Shown here: in pieces, positions 7,644 to 39,435 of the stretch
Layout: the number at the start of each line of letters is the position of its first letter
Position numbering within the stretch: the first letter of the stretch is position 1
Sequence record: OQ603353.1
DNA: 64,000 nucleotides
Strand: one strand, 5' to 3'
The notes under the pieces: generated by a model
Seen by the model: only the letters and a program-made list of their open reading frames with translations
Database searches by the model: none
What the model was told of the DNA's origin: nothing
Position numbers and translations under genes: made by a program

Positions 7644-7653
7644 TTCAATTCCT

Positions 7654-11712: not shown

Positions 11713-11757
11713 CGTTTCGATTCCTTGAGATACAGGGATTGGTTACTGCCTGACGTA

Positions 11758-11781: not shown

Positions 11782-11797
11782 GAGATTACTGCCGAAC

Positions 11798-12238: not shown

Positions 12239-12264
12239 TGTGATACCTCAGAGGTTGGGTTGGA

Positions 12265-12936: not shown

Positions 12937-12987
12937 TCACCTGTCTTCGTGGAGGGGCACGTCCCCTCCGATTTCTGTAGCGAAGAC

Positions 12988-19494: not shown

Positions 19495-19525
19495 GATGAT
19501 TCCTTTGTAATGATGGGAGGGTTGG

Positions 19526-20423: not shown

Positions 20424-20872
20424 CGTCTCTTCTCCAGTGAAATGCCTTCGCGCTCAGAGACGCGAATTGTGTCCCGTCCTACCCGTTGGGCAAGGGATGA
20501 CGAGCACCTGTAGGTCATGGTGCCCCGTACCTTCGGGCTGATTGTGGCTACGCCTATCGCGCGCTCCACGCTCCAGCCCCGACGCAGACGCATGTAAAGC
20601 GTCATGTACTTGATCCCTGTTTCCTCCGCCAGTTGCCGAAGGGTTATCTTTCTCCCTTGATACTCTACGCACACCTGCATGTTCGGATCGTACTCTGACT
20701 TGAGCCCCTGTTTGCAGCCGCAACTGCGAACGTCGCCGGACCTCAAGTTGGTTGTGGTAACGATCTTGTAGATGCCGCAGTCACACAGGCACCGCCATTT
20801 CGTTCCACCGCAACGCTCTAGGACTTCCAGCATCCCGAAACGTTGCCCTTCCAGATTCAGCATGTTTGACAT
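20420..20872 (-). CDS. Homing-endonuclease-associated DNA-binding domains without the HNH nuclease
   Basis: NLEGQRFGMLEV...WRCLCDCG...NLRSG..RSCGC followed directly by VEYQGRKITLRQLAEETGI....LYMRLRRGWSVERAI; no HNH motif in between. Confidence 0.7.
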   Translation of the reverse strand: MSNMLNLEGQRFGMLEVLERCGGTKWRCLCDCGIYKIVTTTNLRSGDVRSCGCKQGLKSEYDPNMQVCVEYQGRKITLRQLAEETGIKYMTLYMRLRRGWSVERAIGVATISPKVRGTMTYRCSSSLAQRVGRDTIRVSEREGISLEKRR

Positions 20873-20881
20873 GGTGACTTC

Positions 20882-21181
20882 CTAGGAATGATGCTGCCTG
20901 TAGACCTGCATGACACTTTCGGGGAGGCCATGACCTGTTGCGCGGACGTAAATCATATCACGCGTGCAGGTGTCACCCATGCCCCACTGGTGGATTTCGG
21001 CCAGTTCGTCGTCAGGCAGTGACGCCAAGAACGCATCGACCACGGCTGCATTCAAGAAACCGTTCGGCTCGATCCCCGAATAGTCGAGGATGTTGATGAG
21101 CAGATCGTGGGCCGAGTCCAATTCATGCTTGTCTGCCTTGACCTTCGCAATGATCGCTTCGTTGATTGCCTTGTTGCTCAC
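20882..21181 (-). CDS. Hypothetical protein
   Basis: Co-oriented and coupled. Confidence 0.6.
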   Translation of the reverse strand: MSNKAINEAIIAKVKADKHELDSAHDLLINILDYSGIEPNGFLNAAVVDAFLASLPDDELAEIHQWGMGDTCTRDMIYVRATGHGLPESVMQVYRQHHS

Positions 21182-21567
21182 AGCTTTCTCCCGAGTGCCT
21201 GAATAATCTCAGGTGGTGCGTTTGGATCGATGTAGGTGTAACCGGCCTTGTTGCAGATGGGTGCGATACGCATTTTCTTGCGTTCGATTTCCTCACGCGC
21301 TGCCTTTTCACGCGCAGCCCACTCCGGAGTCACCTCACGTACCACGTGCTTGACCGTGCTAGGAGCACGCATCGTCGCTGAGGGACCCGAGGCGGCTTTC
21401 TGCATACCTTCGGTGATGACGTACTTACTTTCACGTGGCTTCAACTCAGTGAACTGTTTCTTCGGTCTCTTCTTCGCAGTGTTAGCCTCAATCTCTGCCT
21501 CACGCTTTGCAGCGTTCTCGGCTCGCTTGATCGCCCACAGTTTCTTCTTACGCTGACCTGTTGCCAT
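21178..21567 (-). CDS. Conserved phage hypothetical protein
   Basis: C-terminal IAPICNKAGYTYI resembles the AP.YNKG.YQ motif recalled from large-phage hypotheticals. Confidence 0.6.
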   Translation of the reverse strand: MATGQRKKKLWAIKRAENAAKREAEIEANTAKKRPKKQFTELKPRESKYVITEGMQKAASGPSATMRAPSTVKHVVREVTPEWAAREKAAREEIERKKMRIAPICNKAGYTYIDPNAPPEIIQALGRKL

Positions 21568-21764
21568 TACGAGGTACGCCCAACGTAAATGTCCTTGTCG
21601 CTGCCAATCAGCAGACTCTGACCCGGCTGCAAATCGGCGATGGCGTCGAACTCTTCATCGCTGTAGTCCGTCATGTTGAACACCTGCTGCAACGTGAGGT
21701 CGTTGCGCGTGGTGCTTTCAGCAGCCGAGGGTTCCGAACGATCCTGCATGGTGAAACGGCGCAT
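21567..21764 (-). CDS. Small hypothetical protein
   Basis: TAATG-type coupling. Confidence 0.55.
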   Translation of the reverse strand: MRRFTMQDRSEPSAAESTTRNDLTLQQVFNMTDYSDEEFDAIADLQPGQSLLIGSDKDIYVGRTS

Positions 21765-21988
21765 TAGACTTTCTCCTTCTTGAAGTAGTTGCGGAGGGTT
21801 TCCTCATAGTAGAACATGAGGTCCCGATTTCGTTTGAGATCATCCTGCACACCTGCACCACGCCCCGGATACTTGCGCAGACGCTCAACTTCGCGGGTGG
21901 CCTTGGGAAGGTTCAAGTAGGCCACGCGTGCCTGCTCAAACGACGGCTCACTCGGAGCCGTCACCAAATCGTCGTCGTCGAAATCCAT
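21764..21988 (-). CDS. Small hypothetical protein
   Basis: TGATG overlap places the start at 21988. Confidence 0.55.
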   Translation of the reverse strand: MDFDDDDLVTAPSEPSFEQARVAYLNLPKATREVERLRKYPGRGAGVQDDLKRNRDLMFYYEETLRNYFKKEKV

Positions 21989-22986
21989 CACGAACCCCGA
22001 CTGGCTTCTCGCTCCCACGCATCAGCCTCACGCGGGGTCATGTGGGCATCCAGCGGGAAGTCTTCGGCTGTGTCTTCCTCACGCTGGCGCTTCTCTTCTT
22101 CGTAGATGCGAACCGACTCAGTGAACTGAGCATCCTGTTCGCGTTCTTCTTCGCGCGACCACAGTTCCCGATCACGTTCCAGCTGATCGTAGTTCGGTTC
22201 ATCCAGCGTTTCGCCGAGGCCGTCAACCCCATCGTACTGGCGGTCGAGGTCTTCCGCCCAGTCCGACATTGAATCGTTGTACTCCTGCTCCCGCCTACGT
22301 TCCTCGAAGCGGTAGTTGATGTAGTTGCTGGACAGCAGACGACGGAGGATGCTTTCCATCGCACTCCGCGATGAAGTGCAGAAGACGAAACCGCTATGGC
22401 CACGCATGCTGTCGAAATAGTGCAGCTTGCCTTGGGTGTAGTCGATGGTACCCGACGGGGAATCGTACTCGATGTTCGATTCCAACTGGCGCAGTGAACG
22501 CTGCACTGCCCTCGGGCCACCGAGCCTACCAGCAGTAGCCTGATAGTGGATGCTCACCGAAGTGGCGCGTCGTCCACGCTCTGCCCACATGTACCCGATT
22601 GACTGCAATGGCATCATGAGCTTCGGGGTAGCCTTCTTGAACGGCGGCGCGTCTTCCTTGTTTTCGTGCATCATGCCGTGCACGATCTTGCTGGTTTCTT
22701 CCAGCTTCTCGTACCACTTCTTGCTACGCCAACCGAACTGATTCATGGGACGAACCGGACCGAGGACGATCATGTGATCGACACTGATGCCGTCCTCCAT
22801 GATGACTGCACGGAACAGGTGATCGCCAAGGCGCAACTTGCGCAGTGCCTTGTCCGACAAGGAAGGTATATCGAACCCCGTCTTGTCGTAGCCCCAGCCG
22901 TGATTCCAACGGTCACGCTGGCAAATCACGCGATGCTTCGGCGAGGTGTTGCTCTTGCGGGTACGGTAGTTGGTGGTCATCGTCAT
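21988..22986 (-). CDS. Hypothetical protein with acidic coiled C-terminus
   Basis: 332 aa ORF directly after a CTGTAAATA motif. Confidence 0.7.
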   Translation of the reverse strand: MTMTTNYRTRKSNTSPKHRVICQRDRWNHGWGYDKTGFDIPSLSDKALRKLRLGDHLFRAVIMEDGISVDHMIVLGPVRPMNQFGWRSKKWYEKLEETSKIVHGMMHENKEDAPPFKKATPKLMMPLQSIGYMWAERGRRATSVSIHYQATAGRLGGPRAVQRSLRQLESNIEYDSPSGTIDYTQGKLHYFDSMRGHSGFVFCTSSRSAMESILRRLLSSNYINYRFEERRREQEYNDSMSDWAEDLDRQYDGVDGLGETLDEPNYDQLERDRELWSREEEREQDAQFTESVRIYEEEKRQREEDTAEDFPLDAHMTPREADAWEREASRGS

Positions 22987-26949: not shown

Positions 26950-26983
26950 AAAAGGGGCCACCAAGATCGCTCCCGGCAGCCCC
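26950..26983 (-). terminator. Intrinsic terminator closing the modification operon
   Basis: GGGGCUGCC/GGUGGCCCC stem then UUUUCGUUU. Confidence 0.75.
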
Positions 26984-26988
26984 TAAAT

Positions 26989-27837
26989 TCAGCCTAGTTT
27001 GAAGTCGATGCCCACAGCCACCTTGCTAGTGACCGGATGCACGCCACGTAGGACTGAGGAAATCTGCCGTTCAAACAACGGGGCTTCCCAATCCAAGTAC
27101 GTAGTGGTATCACCATGACGGACGACTATTTCCGCATCCTCTAACAGCGGCGCACCTACCAACTCTGCCACGCCTGCTGCATTCGGATTGTACATTGCGG
27201 CTACTTCGATCACGTCATCGAACCCTAGCACTTGAACTTCACCACTCCAATTTACTGGAGTAGTTGCGGCATGGTCTACCTTTGCAGCCACGTCGAAGCC
27301 ACGCTGCCATCCGATGATGCTCATCAGATGGAAGCCTAGATCGTACTTGATTACATGGTTCCATTGAGAACCATCGGTAGGCATGTTGTTGTGGTACATA
27401 GCCAGCGCAGTGATTGGTTCGTGCACGTCTGCCAGTTTGGAATGGTAAATCCATTCGGCGGAAACAAGCACACGATCATCAATCACGTCTGACTTATACG
27501 GCTTCTCACACAGCACGCGAGACTCAGGGAAGCATTGTACGGACTGCCTAACCATCAGGTCATGAGTGCTATCTGGCGTGGCGATGATAATGAGGTCCGG
27601 AGCATTCCACGTACTCATCATTGCGCCAGTCAGTGTTTTGTATACTGGAACCTGACGCTCCAGCACTGCTTCTTCGTAGAACGAACCCCACTGATTAACC
27701 AGCACCGATCTGCTGTAGACTTCACTAGCCTTGGGGTTCACGTCTACGACAAAGGACAGCGTATGTCCGAGATTCAAGGCAGCGATGGCGTGAGCTTTAC
27801 CCACGCCAAGGCCACCTACAATTCCAATGCGCGCCAT
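26989..27837 (-). CDS. Gfo/Idh/MocA-family NAD(P) oxidoreductase
   Basis: RIGIVGGLGVG Rossmann motif, IIATPDSTH, VLCEKP. Confidence 0.85.
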   Translation of the reverse strand: MARIGIVGGLGVGKAHAIAALNLGHTLSFVVDVNPKASEVYSRSVLVNQWGSFYEEAVLERQVPVYKTLTGAMMSTWNAPDLIIIATPDSTHDLMVRQSVQCFPESRVLCEKPYKSDVIDDRVLVSAEWIYHSKLADVHEPITALAMYHNNMPTDGSQWNHVIKYDLGFHLMSIIGWQRGFDVAAKVDHAATTPVNWSGEVQVLGFDDVIEVAAMYNPNAAGVAELVGAPLLEDAEIVVRHGDTTTYLDWEAPLFERQISSVLRGVHPVTSKVAVGIDFKLG

Positions 27838-27840
27838 TGC

Positions 27841-28950
27841 TTAGTTCGGGTAGCGGTCGTTGTCGAGCAACTTGGTCAGGCGAGTGGTAATCGTGTGCTC
27901 AAACGCATTGACCTGCACGAACACTGGGGCCAGCAACACGTCGAACAGAGTGTGGCGTACCCAATCCTTACTCAGGAGTTGGGCTGCATCTTCCAGCGTG
28001 TAGTACAGGTGCTCGTCGCGGTACATGTATGGGTAGCACGCGCGGTTGGGCACTACCGGAATCGCGCCTAGGACCACTGCATCAATAACGCTGTAACCGA
28101 AAGTCTCCAGCGTTGCAGAGCTAAACAGGAAACTCAGTTTCGCCACCTCGGTCCAATACTTGTCCTTGGTATCACATAGGACGAACTCAATACCTGCATC
28201 CACCGCTTCCTGATACAGTGGTGCGGTGTCGAGGGGGACCGGGTGCAGAACGCGGAAGGTGCGGGTGTCGCCAAGACGATGGGCCAGTTCGATGAAGTCT
28301 TCGGGGCGCTTATCCTCTGCCCAACGATGGCTCCAGCCCACGACAGGCTTTGCCTCTTCAGCACGCGCAGTCAGCGAACGGCGCAGCTGCGCAGGGTTGG
28401 TATCTTGTGGGCTAATGACCGGCAGACCAATGACGTTGACGTTGGTGGAGTTTAGTAGGTCCACTCCATAGTCGGTAGCTACGTAGGTTTCGGTGAAACA
28501 ATCCAGCAGGGTTTCTTCGAGGCTGCGTACCCACGAGCCTGCCGAATACAGGAAGTCACCCGGAGTCTCAACGCTGCTATGGAAGAAGCCGGTCAGGTGG
28601 GCCTTGATGCCTGCGCAGTGCATGTGGAACTTGAGCACCGGAACGGCAGGCGACCAACCATCGGCAAAGTAAACCACGTCGCCATCAGCGATGTGATCCA
28701 GCACACCCAGCACACCCTTGCAGAACGATTTGGTCATCGTCTCGTCGGAGTAGAACATGGACTGCGACGACATGCTGTTGAATTCTTCGCCGCTGTTCAC
28801 CTCAACGACTTCAAACTCATGACCGTTAAGGGTCCGAGTCTTGTCTGCTGCGGTTTGGCGGAGGGCGGCGATCACCTTGTTAGTGATCCACTTCTCAGGG
28901 CGGAAGTCCGACTCGGGACTGCGAACTACAATGATCTTCTTCACTTTCAA
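27841..28950 (-). CDS. GT-B (GT4-like) glycosyltransferase with GTDC1/QTMAN-like motifs
   Basis: WSHRWAEDKRPEDF and KDKY...FSSATLETFGYSVIDAVVLGAIPVVPNRACYP...HLY. Confidence 0.85.
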   Translation of the reverse strand: MKVKKIIVVRSPESDFRPEKWITNKVIAALRQTAADKTRTLNGHEFEVVEVNSGEEFNSMSSQSMFYSDETMTKSFCKGVLGVLDHIADGDVVYFADGWSPAVPVLKFHMHCAGIKAHLTGFFHSSVETPGDFLYSAGSWVRSLEETLLDCFTETYVATDYGVDLLNSTNVNVIGLPVISPQDTNPAQLRRSLTARAEEAKPVVGWSHRWAEDKRPEDFIELAHRLGDTRTFRVLHPVPLDTAPLYQEAVDAGIEFVLCDTKDKYWTEVAKLSFLFSSATLETFGYSVIDAVVLGAIPVVPNRACYPYMYRDEHLYYTLEDAAQLLSKDWVRHTLFDVLLAPVFVQVNAFEHTITTRLTKLLDNDRYPN

Positions 28951-29555
28951 TCCTCTTTGAACTTTCGGTGGTGGAGGCTGCGAGTTACCTCAACATGAAG
29001 CGACGGTCCGCGCTCTCCCTTTTCATGCAACACGAACGACTCTGCAATCAGATCGAAGTTGCCGATCATATACATTTCGCGCTCGTAGATTTGCAGGCAC
29101 TTGCTCTTGGCTTTGGTTTCGCTGTAGAGCGTGAAGTCCGGCACCTTATAGTTGAATGCAGGCACCAGCACGGATGGGCGCTCCTTGACTGGCAGCATCG
29201 ACCACGCGAGCATGGTGTGCTTATGTAGCTCCCGATGATGGCGGTGGCCATACTCACCGTTCGGGTTGTGCGTTACGAGGTAGTTGTACCCATTGTGCAA
29301 CTGCTGATAGATGTTCTCCACCAGCAGCGCAGTGTCCTCGGTCAGCGTGCCTTGGTAATCGTCGTCCAACGCAAGCTGGATACCCCTCGATTTCAACACC
29401 TTACAGGCGGCAAGGAATTCCTTGCCGCGTGCAGTGCGATGACCGTAAGTGGCACATAGATCGTGCCACTCGATATGAGGCGTGGCCTGCCGGATGTTGT
29501 GGCCGAAAATGAAACTGTCATCCGGGTGGGCCATTACAATCAGTGCTTTCATCAC
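28947..29555 (-). CDS. PIG-L/LmbE-family N-acetylhexosamine deacetylase
   Basis: MAHPDDS and THNPNGEYGHRHH metal-binding motifs. Confidence 0.85.
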   Translation of the reverse strand: MMKALIVMAHPDDSFIFGHNIRQATPHIEWHDLCATYGHRTARGKEFLAACKVLKSRGIQLALDDDYQGTLTEDTALLVENIYQQLHNGYNYLVTHNPNGEYGHRHHRELHKHTMLAWSMLPVKERPSVLVPAFNYKVPDFTLYSETKAKSKCLQIYEREMYMIGNFDLIAESFVLHEKGERGPSLHVEVTRSLHHRKFKED

Positions 29556-31075
29556 AGTCCTACTAGCGGCGCGTCCTGCATATACTTTACAGGATCGTCC
29601 TTACCAATCATGGCAAACGCGGTTCGCCGCAACTGGCATGGGCCACAGTTTCCGCAATGAAGCTCACCGCCGTGGTAGCAACTCCAGCTAAGATGGATCG
29701 GCGCTTCAAGCAGCAGACCCGTCTGCGCCACTTCATGCTTCATCAGCTTGTCCAGAGGGTTGACCAACTTCGGAGCGGCCTTGGAGCCAATGGCGATGGC
29801 CTTCTCCATGAGGTCGAAGAACTCCTTCTCGTTGTCTCCGAATGCGCCTGCTTCTTCAAGATTGGCGCCGGTGTAGATTGCACCAAAGCTCCACCGATCA
29901 GCATATGCTGCCATCATGGCGACCATCAGGCCATTACGGAATGGCACCCACTCATTCGCGTATTCGATGCCGTCCTTGCCGGTTGCCACTTCCATCGTGT
30001 CGTCCACCAGCGGGTTGCCACCCAGCTGCTTGAGGAAGTCAAGGTCGAAGAACTTGAGGGTGATCGTCTTCCTGGGATGACGTTCAACCAGCGCAGCGTG
30101 GATAGCTGTCACTGCCTCTGTCTCGCGCGTCTGTGCCCGGCAGCCATAATGGAAGTGGGCGAGCACGATATTGGTGTGATCCCGACAGGCGATTTCTGCA
30201 CTAACCGTGCTATCCATACCGCCGGACAGAATCACGATGGCGCTCTCAGGATTGCCACCGTTCGGATCCTTGTCGAAGCGAGTGGTTGCCGCCTTGCCTA
30301 CGAAGAAGGAGTTCCGGTCGTGGTGGCCATTGAACTTCCAAGTCGAGTTGGCGGCGATGTGGAAGTCAGTATACATGCCATCCCGAATCAGTGCACGCGT
30401 AATGGCCTGACGTTCACTGGCGAATACCACCGCAGCGGCGTTTTCGTGGAAGCCAAAGCTAGGGCACACAGCGGAGAGGGGCCGATAGTTGCGGGCGAGC
30501 CACAGCGTATCAGTCTCCACGTCGTAGACCGCTGACGCGACAGAACCGATCAGGCTTTCAAACTCGCCACGCTCAACCGCGTAGGGAATCGCAGCGCTGT
30601 CCACCTTGGTGCGGGAATGTTCCGGGATGAATTGCGCATCGTTGGCGATGACGCCGTTGTGAACAGCGAAATAGCGTTCAGCGGGCCAGTTGGCGTAGGG
30701 CTGAATGTCATCCTCGCGCTGGTCCTGTAGCCATTCAGTAGTCGGCTCGGCTCGGCAGTTTGCGATCAGGGTGAAACTTCTCACCTCGTTCGGAGTCATG
30801 GCGTCGAGGTTGCGCATCATGATCTGCACCTGACTGATTACAGCCAGTGCACGTGCATTGAGGTCAGGATGGGTATCCCGAATCGAACGGAACGACTGAC
30901 GCTGGAATACGCGATGTGTGCTGCCATCAAGCGACGTGATGAAGGCAGCGTAGCCCATTGCATCACGGCCACGCTCGCAACTTTCAACAGCCAGCGTCAT
31001 CAGTGCGTTGAAGACGACACGCTTCTGCTGTGCGTCAGACCAACGCAGGTTATGGACACCGAAAATGGAACACAT
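29552..31075 (-). CDS. queC: Glutamine amidotransferase class II - QueC fusion (Gat-QueC)
   Basis: N-terminal Ntn Cys (MCSIFG), RGRDAMG, NCRAEPT, HNGVIAND; QueC SGGMDS PP-loop, VPFRNGL, NLEEAGAFGDN, Zn site SCY...HCGNCGPC. Confidence 0.92.
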   Translation of the reverse strand: MCSIFGVHNLRWSDAQQKRVVFNALMTLAVESCERGRDAMGYAAFITSLDGSTHRVFQRQSFRSIRDTHPDLNARALAVISQVQIMMRNLDAMTPNEVRSFTLIANCRAEPTTEWLQDQREDDIQPYANWPAERYFAVHNGVIANDAQFIPEHSRTKVDSAAIPYAVERGEFESLIGSVASAVYDVETDTLWLARNYRPLSAVCPSFGFHENAAAVVFASERQAITRALIRDGMYTDFHIAANSTWKFNGHHDRNSFFVGKAATTRFDKDPNGGNPESAIVILSGGMDSTVSAEIACRDHTNIVLAHFHYGCRAQTRETEAVTAIHAALVERHPRKTITLKFFDLDFLKQLGGNPLVDDTMEVATGKDGIEYANEWVPFRNGLMVAMMAAYADRWSFGAIYTGANLEEAGAFGDNEKEFFDLMEKAIAIGSKAAPKLVNPLDKLMKHEVAQTGLLLEAPIHLSWSCYHGGELHCGNCGPCQLRRTAFAMIGKDDPVKYMQDAPLVGL

Positions 31076-31080: not shown

Positions 31081-31875
31081 TTACTCCGTGGGGTCGAGCA
31101 AGACCGGAACCTTGCGCTCAAAAGGAATGGGCTTCCACGTCTTCTTGTAGTCGAAGACGGCGAGGCCGAGGTTGAGATACAACACGTTCGCCTTGTAGCA
31201 CAGGCGTAGGGCTTGCAGGAGCATCACGTTCCCGACGGTGTACTCCTTGGCGTATTGGTCACGCAGGAGCAACGTGTTGACCCAGTGATACTCATCGTTC
31301 TCTGGGCACATTTGGAACATGCCAATGCCGCATGGGGTGAACTTGCCATCCTCGCTAGGACGGAAAACCAGCACCACGTCACTGTTGGGAATCAGCGACC
31401 ATGCAGCGATGTATTCAAGGTATGCCACCGCCGTTTCTGTCGCACCTTCAAACGTCATGCCCGGATTGAAGTGTTGCAGGTTCGAGACGATGATGTGGAT
31501 GAGTCCAGCCTTGAACTGGTCAAACTCCCCACCACGCGCGGGATGGAACATGAGGTTGGCCGTGTTCTTCCAGCTGCGCTTCAATTGCGACAGTGATTGC
31601 AGGTGCGCCTCAAAACTGGGACGGCTTGCAATGACACGAACCTCTGGACGCATCGTGTGCGCCAGATTGTCCGACAGGTTCAGCACCTCATCGTAGAAGG
31701 CAGGGAACTCAGTGTCGCCCATAGGGACAAGTATGGTCCCTGCGTCTTCGGTATGGACTTCCTCAACGGTAAAGCCATTCGGTGCGGCGACCGGCTTGAA
31801 GGGTAGGCCCTTATTGCGCGCCAGAACCTCGCGGTATACGCGGTACTTCTCGAAGGCTGCGCGAACGTTACTCAT
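31081..31875 (-). CDS. FemAB/BioF2-like GNAT (Acetyltransf_6-type) paralogue 1
   Basis: FEAHLQSLSQLKR and GNVMLLQALRLCYKANVLYLNLG...DYKKTW; start moved to ATG 31875 (GGAG, overlap). Confidence 0.7.
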   Translation of the reverse strand: MSNVRAAFEKYRVYREVLARNKGLPFKPVAAPNGFTVEEVHTEDAGTILVPMGDTEFPAFYDEVLNLSDNLAHTMRPEVRVIASRPSFEAHLQSLSQLKRSWKNTANLMFHPARGGEFDQFKAGLIHIIVSNLQHFNPGMTFEGATETAVAYLEYIAAWSLIPNSDVVLVFRPSEDGKFTPCGIGMFQMCPENDEYHWVNTLLLRDQYAKEYTVGNVMLLQALRLCYKANVLYLNLGLAVFDYKKTWKPIPFERKVPVLLDPTE

Positions 31876-32911
31876 AAACCCATGCTCCTGCTTGGTAGTA
31901 AGGAGGCCACATTTTCTCTTTGGGGGTGGCCGAACAAATTGCGATACCTGCATACGTCATCGTGTCATTACACACGGGACGCTTGTACTGACTGTAGGTG
32001 TGGCCTTCCACAAAGTCAGCAGCCAGCGTGGTATCAATGATGGCGGTCCCCGTCTCCGGCCGCTGTAGGTAATACTGCACAGCATGCGCCAGAACCGCAG
32101 TGCCCAGCCCATTCGGAGCATCGTAGGTGGAGTCCTTGAAGAAGCCAACGAACACGCGACGATTGACGCGCTTCACAAACGTACCGACTGCCACAAGGCG
32201 CAAGCCATCGTAAACCTTGATGGTGTCGCACCCTGAACCAGCAGCCACCGACATTGCCAGCGGTAGCAGCGAACCTTCCACTACCAACGGATGCCACGTA
32301 GAGCACGTCTCTGCTGTCTGCGCGCTCCAGTGTTCCTGCATCCACTCGGCGATGACTGGAATCTCGTAGTCGAACAAGGGCTCGACCTCAAACGTGAGGT
32401 GCTCGGATACGCGCAGCTTCTGGCGTACCTGTGCTCTACGCTTAGTGGACAGAGACGTGAGATATTCATCCCACGTCATGACACCGGCGCGATCACGATA
32501 CCCTAGGTACACCACGTCCGACTTGAGTGAGTAGATTTCTCGTGGGAAGTCTTCGCCGTATCTATGTGGGCAGTCAAGGGCAGGAGGTGCGACGACTGCA
32601 TTATCCTGCTCAAAGGTTGGGATGGATTGAGACAGGTCGATCAAGGTGTTCTTGATTTGATCGACCGTACCTAGCATGAAGCCGGTTGCCATCCCCATAT
32701 TGGTGAACCCTGCGTACAGGGTTCCGTCCGGGTAAGACTCAACAGCGATTGAGCCGTCCGTGCTCACGTAGAGCGGCTTGTCCGCATAGGAAGGTGCAAG
32801 CTTTCTGCGGAGCTTTACCCACTGTGCTTGCACGTCCTTATCTAGCTCAGGGTAGATCGAGTTTGAACATCCGAAACGTTCAATGTAATGCTCGGCAGTC
32901 ATTACGTGCAT
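31868..32911 (-). CDS. FemAB/BioF2-like GNAT paralogue 2
   Basis: WDEYLTSLSTKRRAQVRQKLR; LGTAVLAHAVQY; YKRP. Confidence 0.75.
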   Translation of the reverse strand: MHVMTAEHYIERFGCSNSIYPELDKDVQAQWVKLRRKLAPSYADKPLYVSTDGSIAVESYPDGTLYAGFTNMGMATGFMLGTVDQIKNTLIDLSQSIPTFEQDNAVVAPPALDCPHRYGEDFPREIYSLKSDVVYLGYRDRAGVMTWDEYLTSLSTKRRAQVRQKLRVSEHLTFEVEPLFDYEIPVIAEWMQEHWSAQTAETCSTWHPLVVEGSLLPLAMSVAAGSGCDTIKVYDGLRLVAVGTFVKRVNRRVFVGFFKDSTYDAPNGLGTAVLAHAVQYYLQRPETGTAIIDTTLAADFVEGHTYSQYKRPVCNDTMTYAGIAICSATPKEKMWPPYYQAGAWVYE

Positions 32912-32913: not shown

Positions 32914-33789
32914 TTATTCCTTTGCAGTGTTGTTCAGCAGTGCGTGGCGCAACTTGAGGATGCTTTCGGGATGAGTCAAGTCGCGGTCAGTACGCGCGTG
33001 GAAGAGGGAGCCCCGGAAGGTGCTGTAGCTGACGCCGTATTCCACTGCCGTAACCTGCGCACCCTTGACGTAAGACACCACCGCAGTGTGGAAGGTACGC
33101 GAGAAGTAATCTCGGATGTTCCACATTTGCTTATAGGTGTCATCCCACACAGAGTAGTGCTGGTCCGGTAGCAGATTACTCAGGTCTTCCGGCACGATAC
33201 CAGCAGCGCCGTCGAGGATCAGCAGATACCACTTTTCACGAATACCGAGTTGGGTCAGGAGGTTCTGAGTCAACTCGATGATTTCAGGATTGTTTGGAAC
33301 AACCAGCACGTGCGGTCGCGTGGGAGCGTACAGTTCCCTAGCAGCTTCGATACCTATGACCTTGGCACGACGCTCTGCCATCACAGGGTTAGGTACGAAA
33401 TCGTGCTCGGGCTCAGCGAACTCGTAGCCCCTGCGCGACTGCGGGATGGGCGTTTCCGAATCCAGCAGACGCAGCACGATGGAGGTTTCGGGGCGAATGG
33501 CACACATGGCTTCCAACACAACCTCGGTCATGTTGCGGCCGTAGTCTGCTGCCTGCCATGCAGGACCAACAATCTCATCGCCTTGCAGTTCGACCGTGGT
33601 GCTGCCGATAGCGAAGCACAGGTAGGTCAGCAGTGGAGCCCACGAACTCGGCACACCTTGCAGCGTGTAGTTGCCATCCAGCGATGCTAGATAGGACAGC
33701 GTGTTGACCAGTTCAGGCAGGCTCTTGGAATCCGGACTCAGCTGCGAGGATGCGCCGTCCTCAGTTTGGGAATGAATCTCAATCTTCAT
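32914..33789 (-). CDS. Unknown protein inside the modification operon
   Basis: 291 aa, tightly coupled to both neighbours; no family recognised. Confidence 0.75.
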   Translation of the reverse strand: MKIEIHSQTEDGASSQLSPDSKSLPELVNTLSYLASLDGNYTLQGVPSSWAPLLTYLCFAIGSTTVELQGDEIVGPAWQAADYGRNMTEVVLEAMCAIRPETSIVLRLLDSETPIPQSRRGYEFAEPEHDFVPNPVMAERRAKVIGIEAARELYAPTRPHVLVVPNNPEIIELTQNLLTQLGIREKWYLLILDGAAGIVPEDLSNLLPDQHYSVWDDTYKQMWNIRDYFSRTFHTAVVSYVKGAQVTAVEYGVSYSTFRGSLFHARTDRDLTHPESILKLRHALLNNTAKE

Positions 33790-35416
33790 GCTTCAACCTC
33801 TTGTAGTAGTAGAATGCGTCCGTGCTATCAAGGTCATTACCAAACGAATCTGTCTTGTCATCGTAGTAGCCTACGACAGGCAGGCTCTGCTCAAACCCGA
33901 GGGCACGATACAGGCGCTTGGCAGGATCGTTGGTAACCGAAGTGTGCAAGGCAACGCCATCAAACTCATTCGACAGCAGCGCGAACGCCTTTTGCATCAT
34001 CTGCCTACCGACACCGTGGCCACGCATCTGCTCAGTGACGTACACAAGGTCGATATAGGCGTTCGGATTAAATTGGTTGAAAACAATGTAGCCGATGGGG
34101 TTCCGATACCGCCACCTTGCGACAAGAATCCGAACCCTTCCGCCCTCACGTGCCGTCATCAGGATGTGCGACAGCTGATTGATCGTCTCAAGATCGAAGG
34201 TGTTGAGGTCGTCTTCCCCGAACAGTTCAGAAGTCAGCTTGAGGAACTCAGCCAGCTTGATCTCCGACACGTCGATCTGATCGTTCCACTTGCTGTCCAG
34301 CTTCTTCAACTCCCATCCCTTACCACGGATGTATACCGGAGGTTCAAAGCCGTACTCAGCGCAGTAGTTGCCTGCGCAGAAATCCGAATCCACCACAGCG
34401 TAGTCGAGGGGAACGATGGGCAGTTCAAAGCCTACCGGAATGAACTTTTCCTTGTAGGTACCTTCGGTGTCTAGGTGGTAATACTTTACGTCGAGCGGCA
34501 GTTCTTCCGCAATGAATCGGATCGCCTCGTAGATGGCGAGGAAGCCGATGCGACGCTTCTTGTACTCTTCGTAGCTCACACCCGGCACGGCCAGCTTGTC
34601 CACGTACACAGCGCCACGCACTTCACCGATGTTGGTGCAGATGAGGCGGTTGTCCGCGTCGTAGATATTGAGGACCAACGCATTACGGTCCTCAAGGTTA
34701 TGCAGCATGTTGTTGATGTGGATGATGTTGGTGACGTTATCATCCGAGGTGTAGGTCCACCGCTCAAGGTTGGCGGTGTAGTTCTTGTGGAAGTCAGCAG
34801 ACTTCATCACGTCGCGCAGGCTAACCTGCTCCACCCGAACGCCTTCGTTCAGGCGCATCACAGCACGATAGTTCTCCCGGTTCTTCTTCGACAGGGAGGC
34901 AACGTAGCTTTCCATCGATTCGGGGATGTAGAGGCCATAGGACTTGTCATCCTGATAGCCATACTCACGCGGGTAGATCGGGAAGTAGTTGACGATCATG
35001 CAGGGCGGCAGCTGCTCAAACACGTCATCCAGAAATTCTGGCAGCGCCGGTGGGACGCTGACTTCAAAGTAGCTCGCACCAAACAGGTCAAACTTGGCTT
35101 GCTTGAGGGGATCACGGGTGTTCCACAGATCGTGCAGGATCGTATGGCCTACCATCTGCCCGGTGTTCAGGTCATACACATTCGTAATCACCAGCACGCT
35201 TTGATGCACAAAGTTTGCCAGCAGTACCGAAATGTATTCGTCGTAGGTGGGCAGCAAGTCACCAAAGATGCCCACACCATCAAGTGCTTTGACCCGATGC
35301 AGGTACTGCTCAAACTTTGCCTTCGGGATGAGCTTCACAACGTCAGCGGTGGGTGCGACAACATGCTGCTCGCCGAACACCCGATCAGTGCGAAACTCGC
35401 GCAGTCCGTAATTCAT
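33779..35416 (-). CDS. FemAB-like GNAT paralogue 3 fused to a RimI-like GNAT
   Basis: MESYVASLSKKNRENYR; C-terminal YIDLVYVTEQMRGHGVGRQMM...NDPAKRLYRALGF (acetyl-CoA motifs A and B). Confidence 0.8.
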   Translation of the reverse strand: MNYGLREFRTDRVFGEQHVVAPTADVVKLIPKAKFEQYLHRVKALDGVGIFGDLLPTYDEYISVLLANFVHQSVLVITNVYDLNTGQMVGHTILHDLWNTRDPLKQAKFDLFGASYFEVSVPPALPEFLDDVFEQLPPCMIVNYFPIYPREYGYQDDKSYGLYIPESMESYVASLSKKNRENYRAVMRLNEGVRVEQVSLRDVMKSADFHKNYTANLERWTYTSDDNVTNIIHINNMLHNLEDRNALVLNIYDADNRLICTNIGEVRGAVYVDKLAVPGVSYEEYKKRRIGFLAIYEAIRFIAEELPLDVKYYHLDTEGTYKEKFIPVGFELPIVPLDYAVVDSDFCAGNYCAEYGFEPPVYIRGKGWELKKLDSKWNDQIDVSEIKLAEFLKLTSELFGEDDLNTFDLETINQLSHILMTAREGGRVRILVARWRYRNPIGYIVFNQFNPNAYIDLVYVTEQMRGHGVGRQMMQKAFALLSNEFDGVALHTSVTNDPAKRLYRALGFEQSLPVVGYYDDKTDSFGNDLDSTDAFYYYKRLKHED

Positions 35417-36246
35417 TTCTTCGTTCTCAGGTAACGTGCATGGTTGAATACTTGCGTGGCGTCGAGGGCCTGAATGCCATCAAACAAAGGAAGGTTGGAC
35501 CCAAGGGCATTCGTAGCTGCGTCCTTCTTGATGCGCTCCACCCAATCGCGGAAGTCGAGGCCATCCATATCCATAGCGCCGAGGGCACCGAGGTGTGGGG
35601 CAAACGTTTCCATATCGACAAGGCGCTTGCCCGCCTGACCGGCCCACAGGTCCAGCGCGACCATTGCAGCCTTGGATGCGTTCGGGGTCAGGGAGAACAT
35701 GCTGTCTACGCTAATGTAAGTGGGGAAGTTTAGGCCGAACAGGCCACCTACGATTTCGCCTTCTGCGTTGAGCACTGTGACCGAGTACGCTTTACGTTCC
35801 TTACCATAGTGGAGTGCCTTGTATGCACGCTGAGTAGGAGTATCGAGCCATTGCGTGTACTCGTCTGCATCCTCTTCCTTATCTTCCGGACGCTCAACCG
35901 TAGCGCAGTGGTGAATCACCTTGTCGAAGCCGACGTTCAGCTGGTAGTTCCAACCCTGCTTGCGAATGAACTGCTCGGTAGTCTTGGAAACGTGCAGGCC
36001 ACCAACAGGCAGCACGGCTCGGCGACCGCTGACTTCCCAAATCCATTCGGATTCATCCTCTGTGCCAACGAACCCCATCGGGTGCGCCTGCGCCCTGTCT
36101 GCCAAACCATACAGAAGGTGCGGCGTCATTTCTACGGTCCAGCAGTAGTCGTCATCATCCAGCGGGAAGTGCTCTGCATTGATGTGGCGAACGTCGTTCA
36201 AGTCGTACAGCTTGAACGGAATCTTAGTGTCGCTCGAAGTGTCCAT
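35413..36246 (-). CDS. aat: Leucyl/phenylalanyl-tRNA-protein transferase homologue
   Basis: RAVL..GGLHVSK, FDKVIHHCA, AYKALH, VGGLFG, DSMFS...NASKAA, LVDME...HLGALGA follow the E. coli Aat pattern. Confidence 0.85.
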   Translation of the reverse strand: MDTSSDTKIPFKLYDLNDVRHINAEHFPLDDDDYCWTVEMTPHLLYGLADRAQAHPMGFVGTEDESEWIWEVSGRRAVLPVGGLHVSKTTEQFIRKQGWNYQLNVGFDKVIHHCATVERPEDKEEDADEYTQWLDTPTQRAYKALHYGKERKAYSVTVLNAEGEIVGGLFGLNFPTYISVDSMFSLTPNASKAAMVALDLWAGQAGKRLVDMETFAPHLGALGAMDMDGLDFRDWVERIKKDAATNALGSNLPLFDGIQALDATQVFNHARYLRTKK

Positions 36247-36946
36247 TCAGTTCGTTTCCGTAAAATTCAGTAAGGGTCATACCAAGGTGTGCAGTTTCGT
36301 CAACGGTGTCTGCCTCAATGGAAGCAGAATCCCAAGGAGTGCGCTGAATGAAACTGTTCAGGTGCTTGCAGAGAGCATCGAATGCTTCCCGATTCGTGAT
36401 GAATCGCTTGGCGTGATCGTCACCTTCGCGCCCAGCGTTCTGGATGACCATGACAGGCTCACCCTTGAACCACACGGAAGCCAGCCTCCAGAAGCGGCGC
36501 GGATCGAAGAAGAATTCCTTGAGGACGCGCACTTCAATCTCGGTGTCTTTGTGAAGCGCCTCCATATCGAAGTCGCTGAGTTCTACGTCTAGGCCACCCT
36601 TTAGATGGTTGAAGTAGAAGCCACGCAGAGCGTAAATGGCCGGCTCAACCTTATCGAAGTTTTCGATGGCGTAGACTTCCTCGCAGGTAAAGGGAACCTT
36701 GGCAGCCTCGGCCCTAGCCAGCTGATCCGCCTTGTACTCATTGATGGCGTCTACAAGTTGAGTGACCTCACGGTCCCCCTGTGCACCACCGTCCACCTCC
36801 TCCATCTTGATTTCCACACCGATACTTTTCAGCATGGGCTCAATCTTTACGAGGGCCTGTATGTAGTGCATCGGTCCTAGGCCAGCCTCAATAGCTGCAT
36901 AGACTATGTGGGCAGGCTTGAACACAATCACAGTTTGTTCCGACAT
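36224..36946 (-). CDS. Hypothetical protein, first gene of the modification operon
   Basis: RRFWRLASVWF.GEPVM.IQNAGREGDDH..RFITN motif; follows a CTGTAAATA motif. Confidence 0.75.
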   Translation of the reverse strand: MSEQTVIVFKPAHIVYAAIEAGLGPMHYIQALVKIEPMLKSIGVEIKMEEVDGGAQGDREVTQLVDAINEYKADQLARAEAAKVPFTCEEVYAIENFDKVEPAIYALRGFYFNHLKGGLDVELSDFDMEALHKDTEIEVRVLKEFFFDPRRFWRLASVWFKGEPVMVIQNAGREGDDHAKRFITNREAFDALCKHLNSFIQRTPWDSASIEADTVDETAHLGMTLTEFYGNELNGHFERH

Positions 36947-37968: not shown

Positions 37969-39435
37969 TTAGTATTCGTCAGGGACAATATCCGGAGACG
38001 TGGTGGACGGCGGGGTAGTGTCGTCCTCCGTCTTGACACCGAGGCGGTTCAGGACAGCAGCACCCGCTGGGGTGTTGGCAAAGCTTTCAACCATCGCGCC
38101 CATGTTCAGGCCACCAGCAGCGCCGAACAGACCGGAGACCTTGTTGATGCCTTCGGTCGGGGTACCAGTGTTGGCGATGACCTTGACGCTTGCGCCTTCC
38201 AGCGCCTTGGCCTGTGCGATGCCGACTTCCTTGGTAGCGTTGATGCTTTCCACGCTCAGGAGGTACGTCTGATAGCCTTGGTTCTCACCGATTTCCTTGG
38301 CCAGTTCGATCTGAGTGGTGACCGGGGCACGCAGGCGTGCAGTCTCAGCGGCTGCCTCAGCTTCGCCTCGGGCCTGAATACCCTCAGCCTCACGCTGCGC
38401 CTGAGTCAGTGCTGCATCGGCCTCAAGCTCGATCTGACGCTTGTTACCTTCCGCCCGAATAACCTGCGATTCCTTCTGCGCAGTTGCGGCGATCAGGGCC
38501 GTCTTCTGCTGTGCTTCGGCGTTGATTACCGAGGTCTGACGATCTTCCTCTGCCTTGACCACACTCACTTCACGGCGAATGTCAGCGCCTCGCACTTCCT
38601 CAACCTTGCGCACTTCCATTTCGCGGGTCTTGGTGACCGCAGCTTCCTGCGAGACTTCCTGCTGGGTACGCTCCCGAGCAATACCCACAGTCTTTTCCTT
38701 CTCAGCAGTACGCTTGCCAATCGTCTCTTCCGATTCCTGACGGCGCATTTCCACTTCCTGCTGGGCTTCGATTTCCACCAGCGAAGCAGTGCGCAGGTTG
38801 CGTGCGACCTCAGTACGGCTTTCGGATTCGATCTGAGAAATCTTCTTTGCCATGATGTTGGCAATGACTTCCTGACCCGGCGCATCCTTAATGTCCATCA
38901 ACTCGATGGACTTGACGCTCTTGACGCCCCACGCCGGAAGCTGCTGCTGTACGTCCTCAGTGAAAGCCTTACCGAAGGTGCTACGCTCGGTCATGATTTC
39001 GTTAATGTCGTAGGTCGCCAGCATCGAACGCGCTGCACCCTTTACGATGGATTCCAGCTGGGAGGTCAGTTCCTCAAAGTTCTCAACGCTCTGCGCCGCC
39101 ACGTCCGAATCAGCGATCTGGAAGAAGGCTTCCACTTCGATACGGAACGGGGTCCGATCCTTATCGTATGCCTCGTAGTCGTTCAGGCGAACGCTGAACA
39201 TGGTAGTCGGCAGGATGCGGCGAGTCATACCGATGCGCGGGAACCATTCCGGCCACTTGTAGTAGACGTTACCTGCATCCTTGTCCTTGCCGTAGCTGAC
39301 GGTAGCCTTGGCTTGCTGGACAATGTGTACTTCGTTGGTGGGGACAACAGTGCGGCGACCGAATGCCCAAAGGCAAATGATCGCAAGCAGTGCAAGGATG
39401 GCGAGCACTGCGATACCGATGACGATGATTCCCAT
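37969..39435 (-). CDS. SPFH/Band 7 (flotillin-like) membrane protein
   Basis: N-terminal TM, RRTVVPTNEVHIVQ, SPFH core and long A/E-rich coiled coil. Confidence 0.9.
   Translation of the reverse strand: MGIIVIGIAVLAILALLAIICLWAFGRRTVVPTNEVHIVQQAKATVSYGKDKDAGNVYYKWPEWFPRIGMTRRILPTTMFSVRLNDYEAYDKDRTPFRIEVEAFFQIADSDVAAQSVENFEELTSQLESIVKGAARSMLATYDINEIMTERSTFGKAFTEDVQQQLPAWGVKSVKSIELMDIKDAPGQEVIANIMAKKISQIESESRTEVARNLRTASLVEIEAQQEVEMRRQESEETIGKRTAEKEKTVGIARERTQQEVSQEAAVTKTREMEVRKVEEVRGADIRREVSVVKAEEDRQTSVINAEAQQKTALIAATAQKESQVIRAEGNKRQIELEADAALTQAQREAEGIQARGEAEAAAETARLRAPVTTQIELAKEIGENQGYQTYLLSVESINATKEVGIAQAKALEGASVKVIANTGTPTEGINKVSGLFGAAGGLNMGAMVESFANTPAGAAVLNRLGVKTEDDTTPPSTTSPDIVPDEY

Follow-up and report, generated by a model that had tools for sequence, protein, structure and literature searches.

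A glycosyltransferase encoded by a jumbo Xanthomonas phage belongs to a large, uncharacterised, mostly phage-borne family whose members almost always lie beside the genes that put 7-deazaguanine into DNA, and one half of the protein is related to QTMAN, the human enzyme that adds mannose to queuosine. This association predicts a sugar-decorated form of the deazaguanine base in phage DNA that has not been described. The gene was identified in a 64,000-nucleotide stretch of sequence record OQ603353.1 (hereafter the window), where an earlier note had pointed to a QTMAN/GTDC1-like signature in a glycosyltransferase encoded next to Gat-QueC. Our analysis confirmed that observation. The note's interpretation, that the enzyme comes from a family already acting on a 7-deazaguanine derivative, that this is the best single clue to a deazaguanine acceptor, and that the intervening PIG-L gene suggests an N-acetyl sugar donor, was only partly supported.

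The window was found to be 100% identical to Xanthomonas phage Ep026 / Erwinia phage Ep032 and 99.9% identical to PhiXhv-15, which are jumbo phages of about 228 kb. Positions 27841-31075 of the minus strand hold three tightly packed, co-directional genes encoding a retaining GT-B/GT4-type glycosyltransferase, a PIG-L deacetylase, and Gat-QueC, with PIG-L being the only gene between the other two. The glycosyltransferase open reading frame extends from 27841 to 28950, but the better start codon is a GTG at 28944 that is preceded 6 nt upstream by a GAGGA ribosome-binding site. This start yields a protein of 367 aa (27841-28944), as annotated in PhiXhv-15. Both signature motifs reported in the note are present: WSHRWAEDKRPEDF at residues 206-219 (nt 28294-28335) and TKDKY...SSATLETFGYSVIDAVVLGAIPVVPNRACYPYMYRDEHLY at residues 261-316 (nt 28003-28170).

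The glycosyltransferase matched no Pfam, NCBIfam or PHROG model, but an exhaustive search identified 1197 representative relatives at E<1e-3, which share the motifs HR[WL]xx[DE]KxPExF and SxAx[LQ]ETFG...P..P.R..YP. The nearest named relative of this family is the QTMAN/GTDC1 (DUF3524) family, and the resemblance is far beyond chance. BLASTP against a protein named tRNA-queuosine alpha-mannosyltransferase gave 33% identity over 144 aa (E 4e-19), a second BLASTP comparison gave E 4e-21, and a profile-profile comparison with hhalign gave a probability of 99.7% (E 2.6e-25). The note had specified that placement with LPS/capsule GT4 enzymes, without special affinity to GTDC1, would count against its reading. 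This was not what we observed: a profile built from the close phage homologues scored all 119 QTMAN/DUF3524 proteins at 57-100 bits and gave no hit to six generic LPS, capsule or phage GT4 enzymes, and the reciprocal search gave 48-80 bits against 25 or fewer. The QTMAN-like signature is therefore genuine and specific. However, the affinity is confined to the C-terminal, donor-binding half (probability 99.8%, E 2.4e-29), while hhalign of the N-terminal, acceptor-binding halves gave a probability of only 1.3% (E 0.039). The homology therefore says little about the acceptor. In addition, the QTMAN_N domain (PF12038) was not detected in the window protein even at E<=10, nor in any of its 12 close homologues, and only 1 of 146 top relatives carries it, that one being a true QTMAN fragment. 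In a phylogenetic tree, QTMAN forms its own clade (SH-aLRT 99) and the window protein falls in a separate clade of 67 phage-type proteins (SH-aLRT 96), although the rooting on generic GT4 enzymes is weak. The protein thus represents a neighbouring family rather than a member of the QTMAN family.

An AlphaFold2 (AF2) model of the glycosyltransferase (pLDDT 94.6, pTM 0.92) has the two Rossmann-like domains of a GT-B fold. Its best PDB matches are retaining GT4 enzymes: GlgM, MshA, BshA, sucrose-phosphate synthase, the tetrahydrobiopterin glucosyltransferase BGluT, SenB, and LmbT. Foldseek probability was 1.00 for GlgM, MshA, BshA, sucrose-phosphate synthase, WaaG, and PglA, with E-values down to 3e-11. 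At the sequence level, PDB GT4 proteins were undetectable. The Glycos_transf_1 signature (PF00534) was not detected in the window protein but was found in 91 of 146 wider relatives and, as a weak match, in 10 of 13 close homologues. This signature includes the Arg/Lys phosphate binders and the EX7E motif; residues R209, K214, and E282 are invariant or nearly so, and the window protein has E282-x7-D290 where many relatives have E-x7-E.

The stronger evidence for a link to deazaguanine comes from gene context. In 14 of 15 contexts examined, spanning 21-52% identity, a family member was found beside FolE, QueD, QueE or QueC genes, often next to a DpdA-like transglycosylase. The association thus holds for relatives of only 21-25% identity. 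In four of these contexts (L006, L007, L008, and L010; L-numbers are our labels for contexts), the glycosyltransferase is accompanied by Gat-QueC and a Gfo/Idh/MocA gene. A PIG-L gene is also clear in L006 and L008 (42-46% identity), whereas the match is weak in L007 (27%, E 3e-5) and rests on a faint precomputed Pfam hit in L010. L011 has the arrangement QueD-QueE-FolE-QueC-Gfo-GT-DpdA, and the association was also observed in L014, L015, L021, and L022, as well as in the cultured phages PAC2 (PA5oct-like), ACP17, Phosso, and BCSR5. TGT-like genes containing DSGG[FL]Q directly flank the glycosyltransferase in PAC2, ACP17, L011, and L014, and L014 additionally carries two GT2 genes, which suggests glycan extension. 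The exception is one deep-branching relative (P0143, in L020), which lies with GT2 and ATP-grasp genes and has no deazaguanine genes nearby.

The phage under study has the full gene set, although only Gat-QueC lies inside the window. FolE (E 1.3e-27), QueD (E 1.6e-16), and QueE (phrog_2076, E 8.3e-41) were all detected. A 568-aa DpdA-like protein (positions 11630-13336 of the PhiXhv-15 record) contains DSGGFQ and CTCPIC...HN motifs, the latter of the form CxCxxC..HN. Its best PDB hits are ArcTGT and TGT (E about 0.015), and 6 of 25 of its homologues carry PF01702; that it acts on DNA rather than tRNA is inferred.

The glycosyltransferase gene resides in an operon of 9-10 genes, all on the minus strand, that are tightly packed and partly overlapping. 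The first gene may be that for a 240-aa protein of unknown function (phrog_8664; 36224-36946), which overlaps the next gene, but its membership is uncertain. It is followed by a leucyl/phenylalanyl-tRNA-protein transferase (Aat)-like aminoacyl transferase of 277 aa (35413-36246; PF03588 E 1.9e-30; TIGR00667 E 1.5e-23, below the equivalog cut-off) and a 545-aa fusion (33779-35416) of a FemAB-like Acetyltransf_6 region (residues 178-305; PF13480 E 4.7e-06) with a C-terminal GNAT N-acetyltransferase (residues 429-510; PF00583 E 1.7e-14) that has a homologue in L007. The 291-aa protein encoded at 32914-33789 bears only a weak resemblance to the ArcS core (DUF5591 E 0.052 and ArcS E 0.028, both below the cut-offs), and its only other phage homologues are in Vibrio phages GR7B and GR11A. 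The 347-aa protein encoded at 31868-32911 is lineage-specific, with no significant family hit and no profile similarity to the product of the next gene (31081-31953), which we call u290. The latter is a conserved partner of Gat-QueC with homologues in L006, L007, L008, and L010, and its true start is possibly Met27 at 31875. Based on an AF2 model of moderate confidence (pLDDT 63), for which the best Foldseek matches are FemX, the MprF synthase domain, ATE1, and Sba18 (E 2e-06 to 3e-04), u290 is probably a FemX/MprF/ATE1-like aminoacyl-tRNA-dependent aminoacyl transferase.

Gat-QueC itself (29552-31075; 507 aa) consists of a class-II glutamine amidotransferase with N-terminal MC fused to QueC with an SGGMDS PP-loop and a C-terminal Cys cluster (QueC E 4.4e-49, GATase_7 E 5.9e-08, phrog_10428 E 1.5e-83). 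Its gene overlaps by 4 nt with that for the PIG-L/LmbE-family de-N-acetylase (28947-29555; 202 aa; PF02585, 31.2 bits against a cut-off of 28.2), whose AHPDD and GHRHH (HxxH) metal-binding motifs are intact and align with the zinc ligands of MshB. The PIG-L stop codon is followed two bases later by the GTG start of the glycosyltransferase. The last gene (26989-27837) encodes a 282-aa Gfo/Idh/MocA-type NAD(P) oxidoreductase (PF01408 E 4.8e-09) with a Rossmann motif and the EKP motif (VLCEKPY). Its homologues lie next to or near the glycosyltransferase in L006, L007, L008, L010, and L011, making it the conserved partner of the enzyme in this clade, and its inferred role is oxidation or reduction of the sugar. 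A terminator-like hairpin with a 14-bp stem followed by a T-run (26953-26984) probably marks the end of the operon.

The explanation we favor, with moderate confidence, is that the family is a dedicated accessory of the phage 7-deazaguanine DNA-modification pathway and that the enzyme adds a sugar to a 7-deazaguanine base of phage DNA. In this view, Gat-QueC would supply the 7-substituted deazaguanine, which by analogy with phage 9g would be the archaeosine base G+. The glycosyltransferase would then transfer a sugar, most likely alpha-GlcNAc from UDP-GlcNAc, either to the free base before its insertion by the DpdA-like enzyme or to DNA afterwards. PIG-L would remove the N-acetyl group to expose an amine, u290 together with the lineage-specific Fem/GNAT and Aat-like enzymes would aminoacylate and cap that amine, and the Gfo/Idh/MocA enzyme would adjust the redox state of the sugar. 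The product would be a bulky glycosyl (aminoacyl-glucosaminyl) 7-deazaguanine in virion DNA that blocks host nucleases. What our analysis establishes is the fold, the family relationships, the gene content, and the conserved neighborhood. The acceptor and its linking atom, the donor, the order and timing of the steps, and the biological role are inferred, as is the presence of a modified nucleoside in virion DNA, since the paper describing these phages reports no chemical data on their DNA.

Published work is consistent with parts of this scheme, although we found no paper describing it. Gat-QueC plus DpdA of phage 9g suffice to put dG+ into DNA (PMC6884629), PA5oct DNA, whose modification is unidentified, resists restriction enzymes whose sites contain G (PMC12191111), and HuiG, a GT4-type enzyme, puts GlcNAc on a preQ0 derivative (PMC7439116; bioRxiv 2026.04.15.718813). 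The note's inference from PIG-L is likewise consistent with the known pairing of GT4 GlcNAc transferases with PIG-L/LmbE deacetylases, but PIG-L is the only basis for the proposed donor, and QTMAN itself uses GDP-mannose. On the other hand, the glycosyltransferase is acidic (pI 5.25, net charge -14) and its closest folds act on small molecules, which fits action on a free base or another metabolite at least as well as action on DNA. Moreover, relatives occur with CDG-only, QueC, and Gat-QueC gene sets, so no single 7-substituent can be the common acceptor unless specificity has diverged or a ring atom such as N2 is used. The nitrile of preQ0 is not a glycosyl acceptor.

Of the alternatives, the one that survives best, though we consider it unlikely, is that the glycosyltransferase works in the same pathway but builds an amino-sugar unit on another carrier. 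After deacetylation by PIG-L, which would create exactly the required free amine, the sugar would be joined to the 7-carboxyl or nitrile carbon of the deazaguanine by a QueC-type or ArcS-type enzyme, resulting in an amide or amidine linkage rather than a glycosidic one. QueC-like enzymes that adenylate CDG and couple it to amines are discussed for the roseomycin family (bioRxiv 2026.04.15.718813), ArcS-type chemistry adds an amine to the preQ0 nitrile, a weak DUF5591/ArcS-like reading frame lies in the operon, and the closest folds of the glycosyltransferase use small acceptors. However, no candidate carrier is evident, the ArcS-like hit is below threshold, the Gat domain points to ammonia transfer as in 9g, where the product is G+, and relatives of the glycosyltransferase occur in clusters without QueC, PIG-L or ArcS-like genes.

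Two further readings are less likely still. In the first, the TGT-like protein would insert a deazaguanine into host or phage tRNA, where a QTMAN-like glycosyltransferase would decorate it to tune translation. QTMAN acts on tRNA, Gat-QueC and ArcS are archaeal tRNA-pathway enzymes, the best solved-structure match of the TGT-like protein is archaeosine tRNA-guanine transglycosylase (E 0.017), and the only tRNA annotated in the 50-kb stretch of the PhiXhv-15 record inspected is tRNA-Asn, a queuosine-type tRNA. Against this, phage Gat-QueC plus DpdA modify DNA and 9g DpdA does not complement a tgt mutant (PMC6884629), PA5oct virion DNA is restriction-resistant at sites containing G, the TGT-like protein has a long Lys-rich tail typical of non-specific DNA binding, the acceptor-binding half of the glycosyltransferase is not detectably related to QTMAN_N, and the window contains no tRNA gene. 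In the second, which is equally improbable, the cluster would make a soluble glycosylated 7-deazapurine metabolite like huimycin or dapiramicin. Huimycin is GlcNAc on a preQ0 derivative made by preQ0 genes plus a GT4-type enzyme, and the acidic character and small-acceptor folds of the glycosyltransferase would suit such a role, but all contexts are phage genomes with DNA-replication neighbors, TGT/DpdA-like genes are adjacent, and phages are not known to make such metabolites. Finally, an ordinary GT4 enzyme for cell-surface polysaccharide or LPS remodelling, or one acting on another DNA base such as 5-hydroxymethylpyrimidine, lying next to Gat-QueC by chance, is very unlikely: although PhiXhv-15 annotates the protein only as 'glycoside transferase' and the PF00534 matches and the L020 relative are compatible with it, the absence of any hit of the family profile to six LPS, capsule or phage GT4 controls, the failure of sequence searches to detect PDB GT4 sequences, the neighborhood conserved in 14 of 15 contexts, and the compact operon ending in a terminator-like hairpin all argue otherwise.

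Compared with QTMAN/GTDC1 (QTMAN_N PF12038 plus Glycos_transf_1), including the bacterial DUF3524 proteins, the phage enzyme has a clearly homologous C-terminal GT4 half, sharing HRWxxDKxPExF and the S(S/T)Ax(L/H)E(T/F)FG...P..P.R..YP....Y block, and both are linked to a 7-deazaguanine pathway. In the QTMAN family the corresponding motifs are HRWExDKxPExFF and ST(A)xHEFFG...P..P.RL.YPE. It differs in its N-terminal half and clade, and in being phage-encoded beside DpdA-like and preQ0/CDG genes rather than in a queuosine-tRNA setting. No cyclopentenediol acceptor can be made here, and the PIG-L partner suggests that the donor in this clade is probably not GDP-mannose. Whereas QTMAN transfers mannose from GDP-mannose to queuosine-34 of tRNA-Asp, the context here, with a DpdA-like gene and PIG-L, argues for a different acceptor and donor. 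The pairs of GT4 GlcNAc transferase and PIG-L/LmbE deacetylase (MshA/MshB of mycothiol, BshA/BshB of bacillithiol, and PIG-A/PIG-L of GPI anchors) resemble the phage module in fold, which is closest to MshA and BshA, and in the adjacent PIG-L with intact metal ligands. The predicted amide-forming and GNAT enzymes that follow mirror the order MshA, MshB, MshC, MshD. However, there is no sequence-level similarity to MshA or BshA, the predicted acceptor is not inositol phosphate, malate or phosphatidylinositol, and aminoacylation appears to be aminoacyl-tRNA-dependent (Fem/Aat-like) rather than by an MshC-type ligase. With the described phage 7-deazaguanine DNA-modification systems, the phage shares the full gene set, and the QueC half of its Gat-QueC is 41% identical to that of the Nonagvirus (9g-like) phages, which carry dG+. 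None of those systems includes a glycosyltransferase, a deacetylase or aminoacyl transferases, and no glycosylated deazaguanine in DNA was found in the literature we could search. HuiG of the huimycin pathway, which transfers GlcNAc from UDP-GlcNAc onto the 2-amino group of an O6-methyl-preQ0, is likewise a GT4-type enzyme encoded with FolE, QueD, QueE, and QueC homologues, but it belongs to an actinomycete secondary-metabolite cluster, acts on a free base, and has no DpdA partner. Lastly, as with the T4 alpha/beta-glucosyltransferases and the glycan-adding enzymes of 5hmC phages, which act on hydroxymethylpyrimidines, a phage glycosyltransferase is predicted here to decorate a non-canonical DNA base as an anti-restriction measure, and the extra GT2 genes of L014 suggest glycan extension. 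The glycosyltransferase family is different, the predicted target is a different base, a purine analogue, and the base is probably introduced by base exchange rather than through a modified dNTP.

The window comes from a jumbo phage of about 228 kb and is 100% identical to Xanthomonas phage Ep026 and Erwinia phage Ep032, and 99.9% identical to PhiXhv-15. Its minus strand carries three tightly packed genes encoding a glycosyltransferase of 367/369 aa (27841-28944/28950), a PIG-L de-N-acetylase (28947-29555), and a Gat-QueC (29552-31075). The likely start codon of the glycosyltransferase gene is the GTG at 28944, which is preceded by a GAGGA ribosome-binding site 6 nt upstream. Both sequence motifs in which an earlier note had seen a likeness to the queuosine mannosyltransferase QTMAN/GTDC1 are present in the protein, and the observation made there holds. 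The three genes belong to a longer co-directional operon of overlapping or nearly abutting genes, which from upstream to downstream encodes a phrog_8664 protein, an Aat-like L/F-transferase, a FemAB-like + GNAT fusion of 545 aa, two proteins of unknown function, a protein conserved alongside Gat-QueC (here called u290), Gat-QueC, PIG-L, the glycosyltransferase, and a Gfo/Idh/MocA oxidoreductase. A strong terminator-like hairpin follows at 26984-26953. The Aat-like leucyl/phenylalanyl-tRNA transferase and the FemAB-like + GNAT fusion (33779-36246, minus strand) represent an unusual concentration of aminoacyl-tRNA-dependent transferases for a phage, and they share their operon with the deazaguanine and sugar genes. 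The annotated start of u290 (31081-31953, minus strand) overlaps the upstream gene by 86 nt and its first ~24 residues are modelled as disordered, whereas Met27 (ATG at 31875) would leave only a 2-nt gap and is probably the true start. When the 347-aa protein of the operon (u347) and the N-terminus of the 545-aa protein were compared with u290 as possible paralogues by hhalign, no similarity was found, and no family could be given to u347. The 291-aa ORF at 32914-33789 (minus strand) gave only sub-threshold hits to the ArcS core (DUF5591, E 0.03-0.05), and its only other phage homologues are in the Vibrio coralliilyticus phages GR7B and GR11A. Just upstream of the operon (37969-39435, minus strand) lies a gene for a 488-aa SPFH/Band_7 protein with an N-terminal membrane segment and a long charged coiled region.

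The glycosyltransferase matched no Pfam, NCBIfam or PHROG model, even at E<=10. Searches of PDB sequences with the protein and with its family profile returned only noise (BGluT E 2, CapJ E 0.32), and no QTMAN sequence was matched in PDB by these searches. A high-confidence AF2 model (pLDDT 94.6) was nevertheless a GT-B fold, closest to retaining GT4 enzymes: GlgM, MshA, BshA, sucrose-phosphate synthase, the tetrahydrobiopterin glucosyltransferase BGluT, SenB, and LmbT. No QTMAN appeared among its top 50 fold matches. A word-indexed search identified 12 close homologues, and an exhaustive phmmer search of 1.84 billion representatives found 1197 at E<1e-3 and 255 at E<1e-10. These are nearly all proteins of 320-370 aa that share the motifs HR[WL]xx[DE]KxPExF and SxAx[LQ]ETFG...P..P.R..YP.

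To determine whether the resemblance to QTMAN is specific, we collected 119 QTMAN/DUF3524 proteins and aligned 37 of them. Two true QTMAN-family fragments were already among the top 150 phmmer hits (E about 1e-13), one of which carries the end of the QTMAN_N domain. Profile-profile comparison with the phage clade gave a probability of 99.7% and E 2.6e-25. With the phage-clade HMM, all 119 QTMAN proteins scored 57-100 bits, while six generic GT4 controls (E. coli WcaL, WcaI, WcaC, WaaG and WaaB, and an unrelated phage GT4) gave no hit at all, and the reciprocal search gave 48-80 bits against 25 or fewer for the controls. Placement with LPS or capsule GT4 enzymes without special affinity to GTDC1, which had been named in advance as grounds for rejecting the idea, was thus not observed. 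However, when the proteins were split, the similarity was found to lie in one half only. The C-terminal, nucleotide-sugar-binding halves are related at E 2.4e-29, but the N-terminal, acceptor-binding halves are not (E 0.039, no better than cross-domain controls), and no family member close to the window protein has QTMAN_N. In a tree, QTMAN (support 99) and the phage family (support 96) form separate neighbouring clades. We conclude that this is a sister family sharing the donor-binding module of QTMAN rather than a QTMAN, and that the homology by itself does not reveal the acceptor. The genome context of a bacterial QTMAN homologue was examined as well, but was uninformative. The interpretation offered in the earlier note, that membership in a family already glycosylating a 7-deazaguanine derivative points to a deazaguanine acceptor and that the intervening PIG-L points to an N-acetyl sugar donor, is partly supported.

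The decisive evidence comes from gene neighbourhood. Close homologues (35-52% identity) all sit with Gat-QueC, u290 and a Gfo/Idh/MocA gene in the genomic contexts designated L006, L007, L008 and L010, and a PIG-L gene is there too, clear in L006 and L008 and faint or weak in L007 and L010. More distant members (21-37% identity) are found in several arrangements. In context L011, the order is QueD-QueE-FolE-QueC-Gfo-GT followed by a phrog_887 'queuine tRNA-ribosyltransferase', and a Band_7 gene also lies near the glycosyltransferase homologue. In context L014, the order is QueD-QueE-FolE...radical-SAM/SPASM-GT followed by a homologue of that transglycosylase. Two GT2 glycosyltransferases and a glycerophosphotransferase-like gene (L014:4449-6941) sit between the QueD/QueE/FolE genes and the QTMAN-like glycosyltransferase, next to the radical-SAM/SPASM gene, which suggests a longer glycan on the base in that phage. 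The family member lies next to a FolE/QueF-like gene in L015, near QueD in L021, and after QueD-QueE-FolE2 in L022. The same holds in cultured phages. The PA5oct-like Pseudomonas phage vB_Pa-PAC2 (L016) has a DSGGFQ protein, then the GT, then an epimerase-domain protein and a phosphoribosyltransferase-domain protein (8665-9623), and then QueE, hinting at a nucleotide-level route or sugar tailoring in PA5oct-like phages. Acidovorax ACP17 (L017) has QueD, FolE, a DSGGLQ protein, the GT and QueE, Sinorhizobium Phosso has the GT, FolE and QueE, and Burkholderia BCSR5 has the GT, QueE and FolE. A small protein of 113-127 aa (phrog_17812, unknown function) is encoded immediately downstream of the glycosyltransferase in ACP17 (L017:7916-8299) and L015 (1781-2122), and 85 nt downstream in the PA5oct-like phage (L016:8006-8383), and is a likely dedicated partner in that subclade. 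Only one deep-branching relative (L020) lacks deazaguanine neighbours, making 14 of 15 contexts in which they are present.

The phage itself has the whole deazaguanine toolkit: FolE, QueD, QueE, and a Gat-QueC whose QueC half is 41% identical to that of the 9g-like phages. It also encodes an unannotated 568-aa TGT-superfamily (DpdA-like) protein upstream of the window (PhiXhv-15 record, L002:11630-13336), with DSGGFQ and CTCPIC..HN (CxCxxC..HN) motifs and a long Lys-rich C-terminal tail. A Pfam scan of 56 hypothetical proteins of the phage found no TGT domain, and this protein was identified only through synteny with relatives, its motifs and its homologues. Its best PDB matches are ArcTGT and TGT, six of its 25 homologues carry PF01702, and one of those homologues appears, on indirect grounds, to lie on the same 109-kb contig as a glycosyltransferase homologue. 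Relatives of the protein lie directly next to the glycosyltransferase in PA5oct-like and ACP17 phages. The gene annotated 'thiamine biosynthesis protein' (7072-7755, minus strand) was considered as a possible second QueC and rejected, because it encodes a ThiF/E1-like adenylyltransferase (PF00899, E 9e-21). An acyl carrier protein is annotated near 533-802. Outside the window (PhiXhv-15 record 19115-22398 and elsewhere), the phage carries counter-defence genes, namely a Tad3 anti-Thoeris homologue (E 4e-27), a NADAR-domain protein and an Acb1 anti-CBASS homologue, and its hypothetical proteins also include an ADP-ribosyltransferase-family hit and a spermidine-synthase-like hit. In phage 9g, Gat-QueC plus DpdA are sufficient to put dG+ into DNA, with G+ forming either before or after insertion (PMC6884629), and the DNA of PA5oct resists restriction enzymes whose sites contain G, the modification not having been identified (PMC12191111).

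What the analysis establishes is a retaining GT4-type fold (in the AF2 model), an intact PIG-L (AHPDD and HxxH motifs), a Gat-QueC with an N-terminal Cys, a PP-loop and a Cys cluster read directly from the sequence, further Fem-like, GNAT and Aat-like enzymes, and a conserved u290. A sequence search of PDB with the u290 profile found nothing, but its moderate-confidence model (pLDDT 63) best matches aminoacyl-tRNA-dependent transferases: FemX, the MprF synthase domain, ATE1, and Sba18, which aminoacylates an amino sugar. The activities themselves and their order are our inference. In the most likely scheme, the glycosyltransferase would put an alpha-linked sugar, probably GlcNAc, on the deazaguanine derivative, PIG-L would expose the amine, the aminoacyl transferases and the GNAT domain would build and cap a short aminoacyl decoration, and the Gfo enzyme would adjust the sugar. 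The donor is inferred from PIG-L alone. Because the enzyme is acidic (pI 5.25) and its nearest folds use small acceptors, glycosylation of the free base before a DpdA-like insertion is as plausible as action on DNA. Moreover, relatives occur with CDG-only, QueC and Gat-QueC gene sets, so the acceptor atom cannot be the same 7-substituent throughout.

None of the alternatives is excluded by computation. The one that survives best, though still unlikely, is an amide- or amidine-linked amino sugar, followed by a tRNA target and a soluble metabolite, both of which we consider improbable. The reading as an unrelated GT4 enzyme is the least likely, and its form as a generic surface-polysaccharide GT4 enzyme was rejected on the basis of the control scores and the gene contexts.

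In its broadest form, which the evidence leaves about as likely as not, our reading is that a family of about 1200 representative, mostly phage-borne glycosyltransferases, sister to the QTMAN/GTDC1 family, defines an undescribed class of DNA hypermodification, glycosylated 7-deazaguanine, with the sugar in this Xanthomonas jumbo phage being further deacetylated and aminoacylated from aminoacyl-tRNA. This would explain the unidentified modified G of PA5oct-like phages, for which it gives a concrete candidate. It would also suggest that the sugar-transfer module of eukaryotic queuosine mannosylation shares ancestry with a phage anti-restriction enzyme, and it gives an evolutionary context for QTMAN, whose origin is obscure. 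The family is large and occurs in cultured phages of Pseudomonas, Xanthomonas, Acidovorax, Burkholderia and Sinorhizobium, including candidates for therapy and biocontrol. It thus bears on host range, on resistance to type IV and END-type nucleases, and on how readily such genomes can be sequenced and cloned, and it offers new enzymes for site-specific sugar tagging of DNA. Literature searches on QTMAN/GTDC1 with phage, Gat-QueC with glycosyltransferase, and DpdA with glycosyltransferase found nothing relevant. None of the papers that could be searched links QTMAN/GTDC1-like enzymes, or any glycosyltransferase, to phage deazaguanine clusters, and the paper describing these phages does not mention deazaguanine.

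Precedents for the proposed chemistry exist in other systems. The GT4-type enzyme HuiG adds GlcNAc to the 2-amino group of a preQ0 derivative. The GT-B enzyme EarP N-glycosylates a guanidino group. The inferred sequence of steps follows the same logic as MshA-MshB-MshC-MshD in mycothiol synthesis, applied here to a DNA base. Deazaguanine DNA modifications and glycosylated hydroxymethylpyrimidines are both known phage defences against restriction enzymes and CRISPR, and a glycosylated deazaguanine would combine them and add a new chemical class of natural DNA base.
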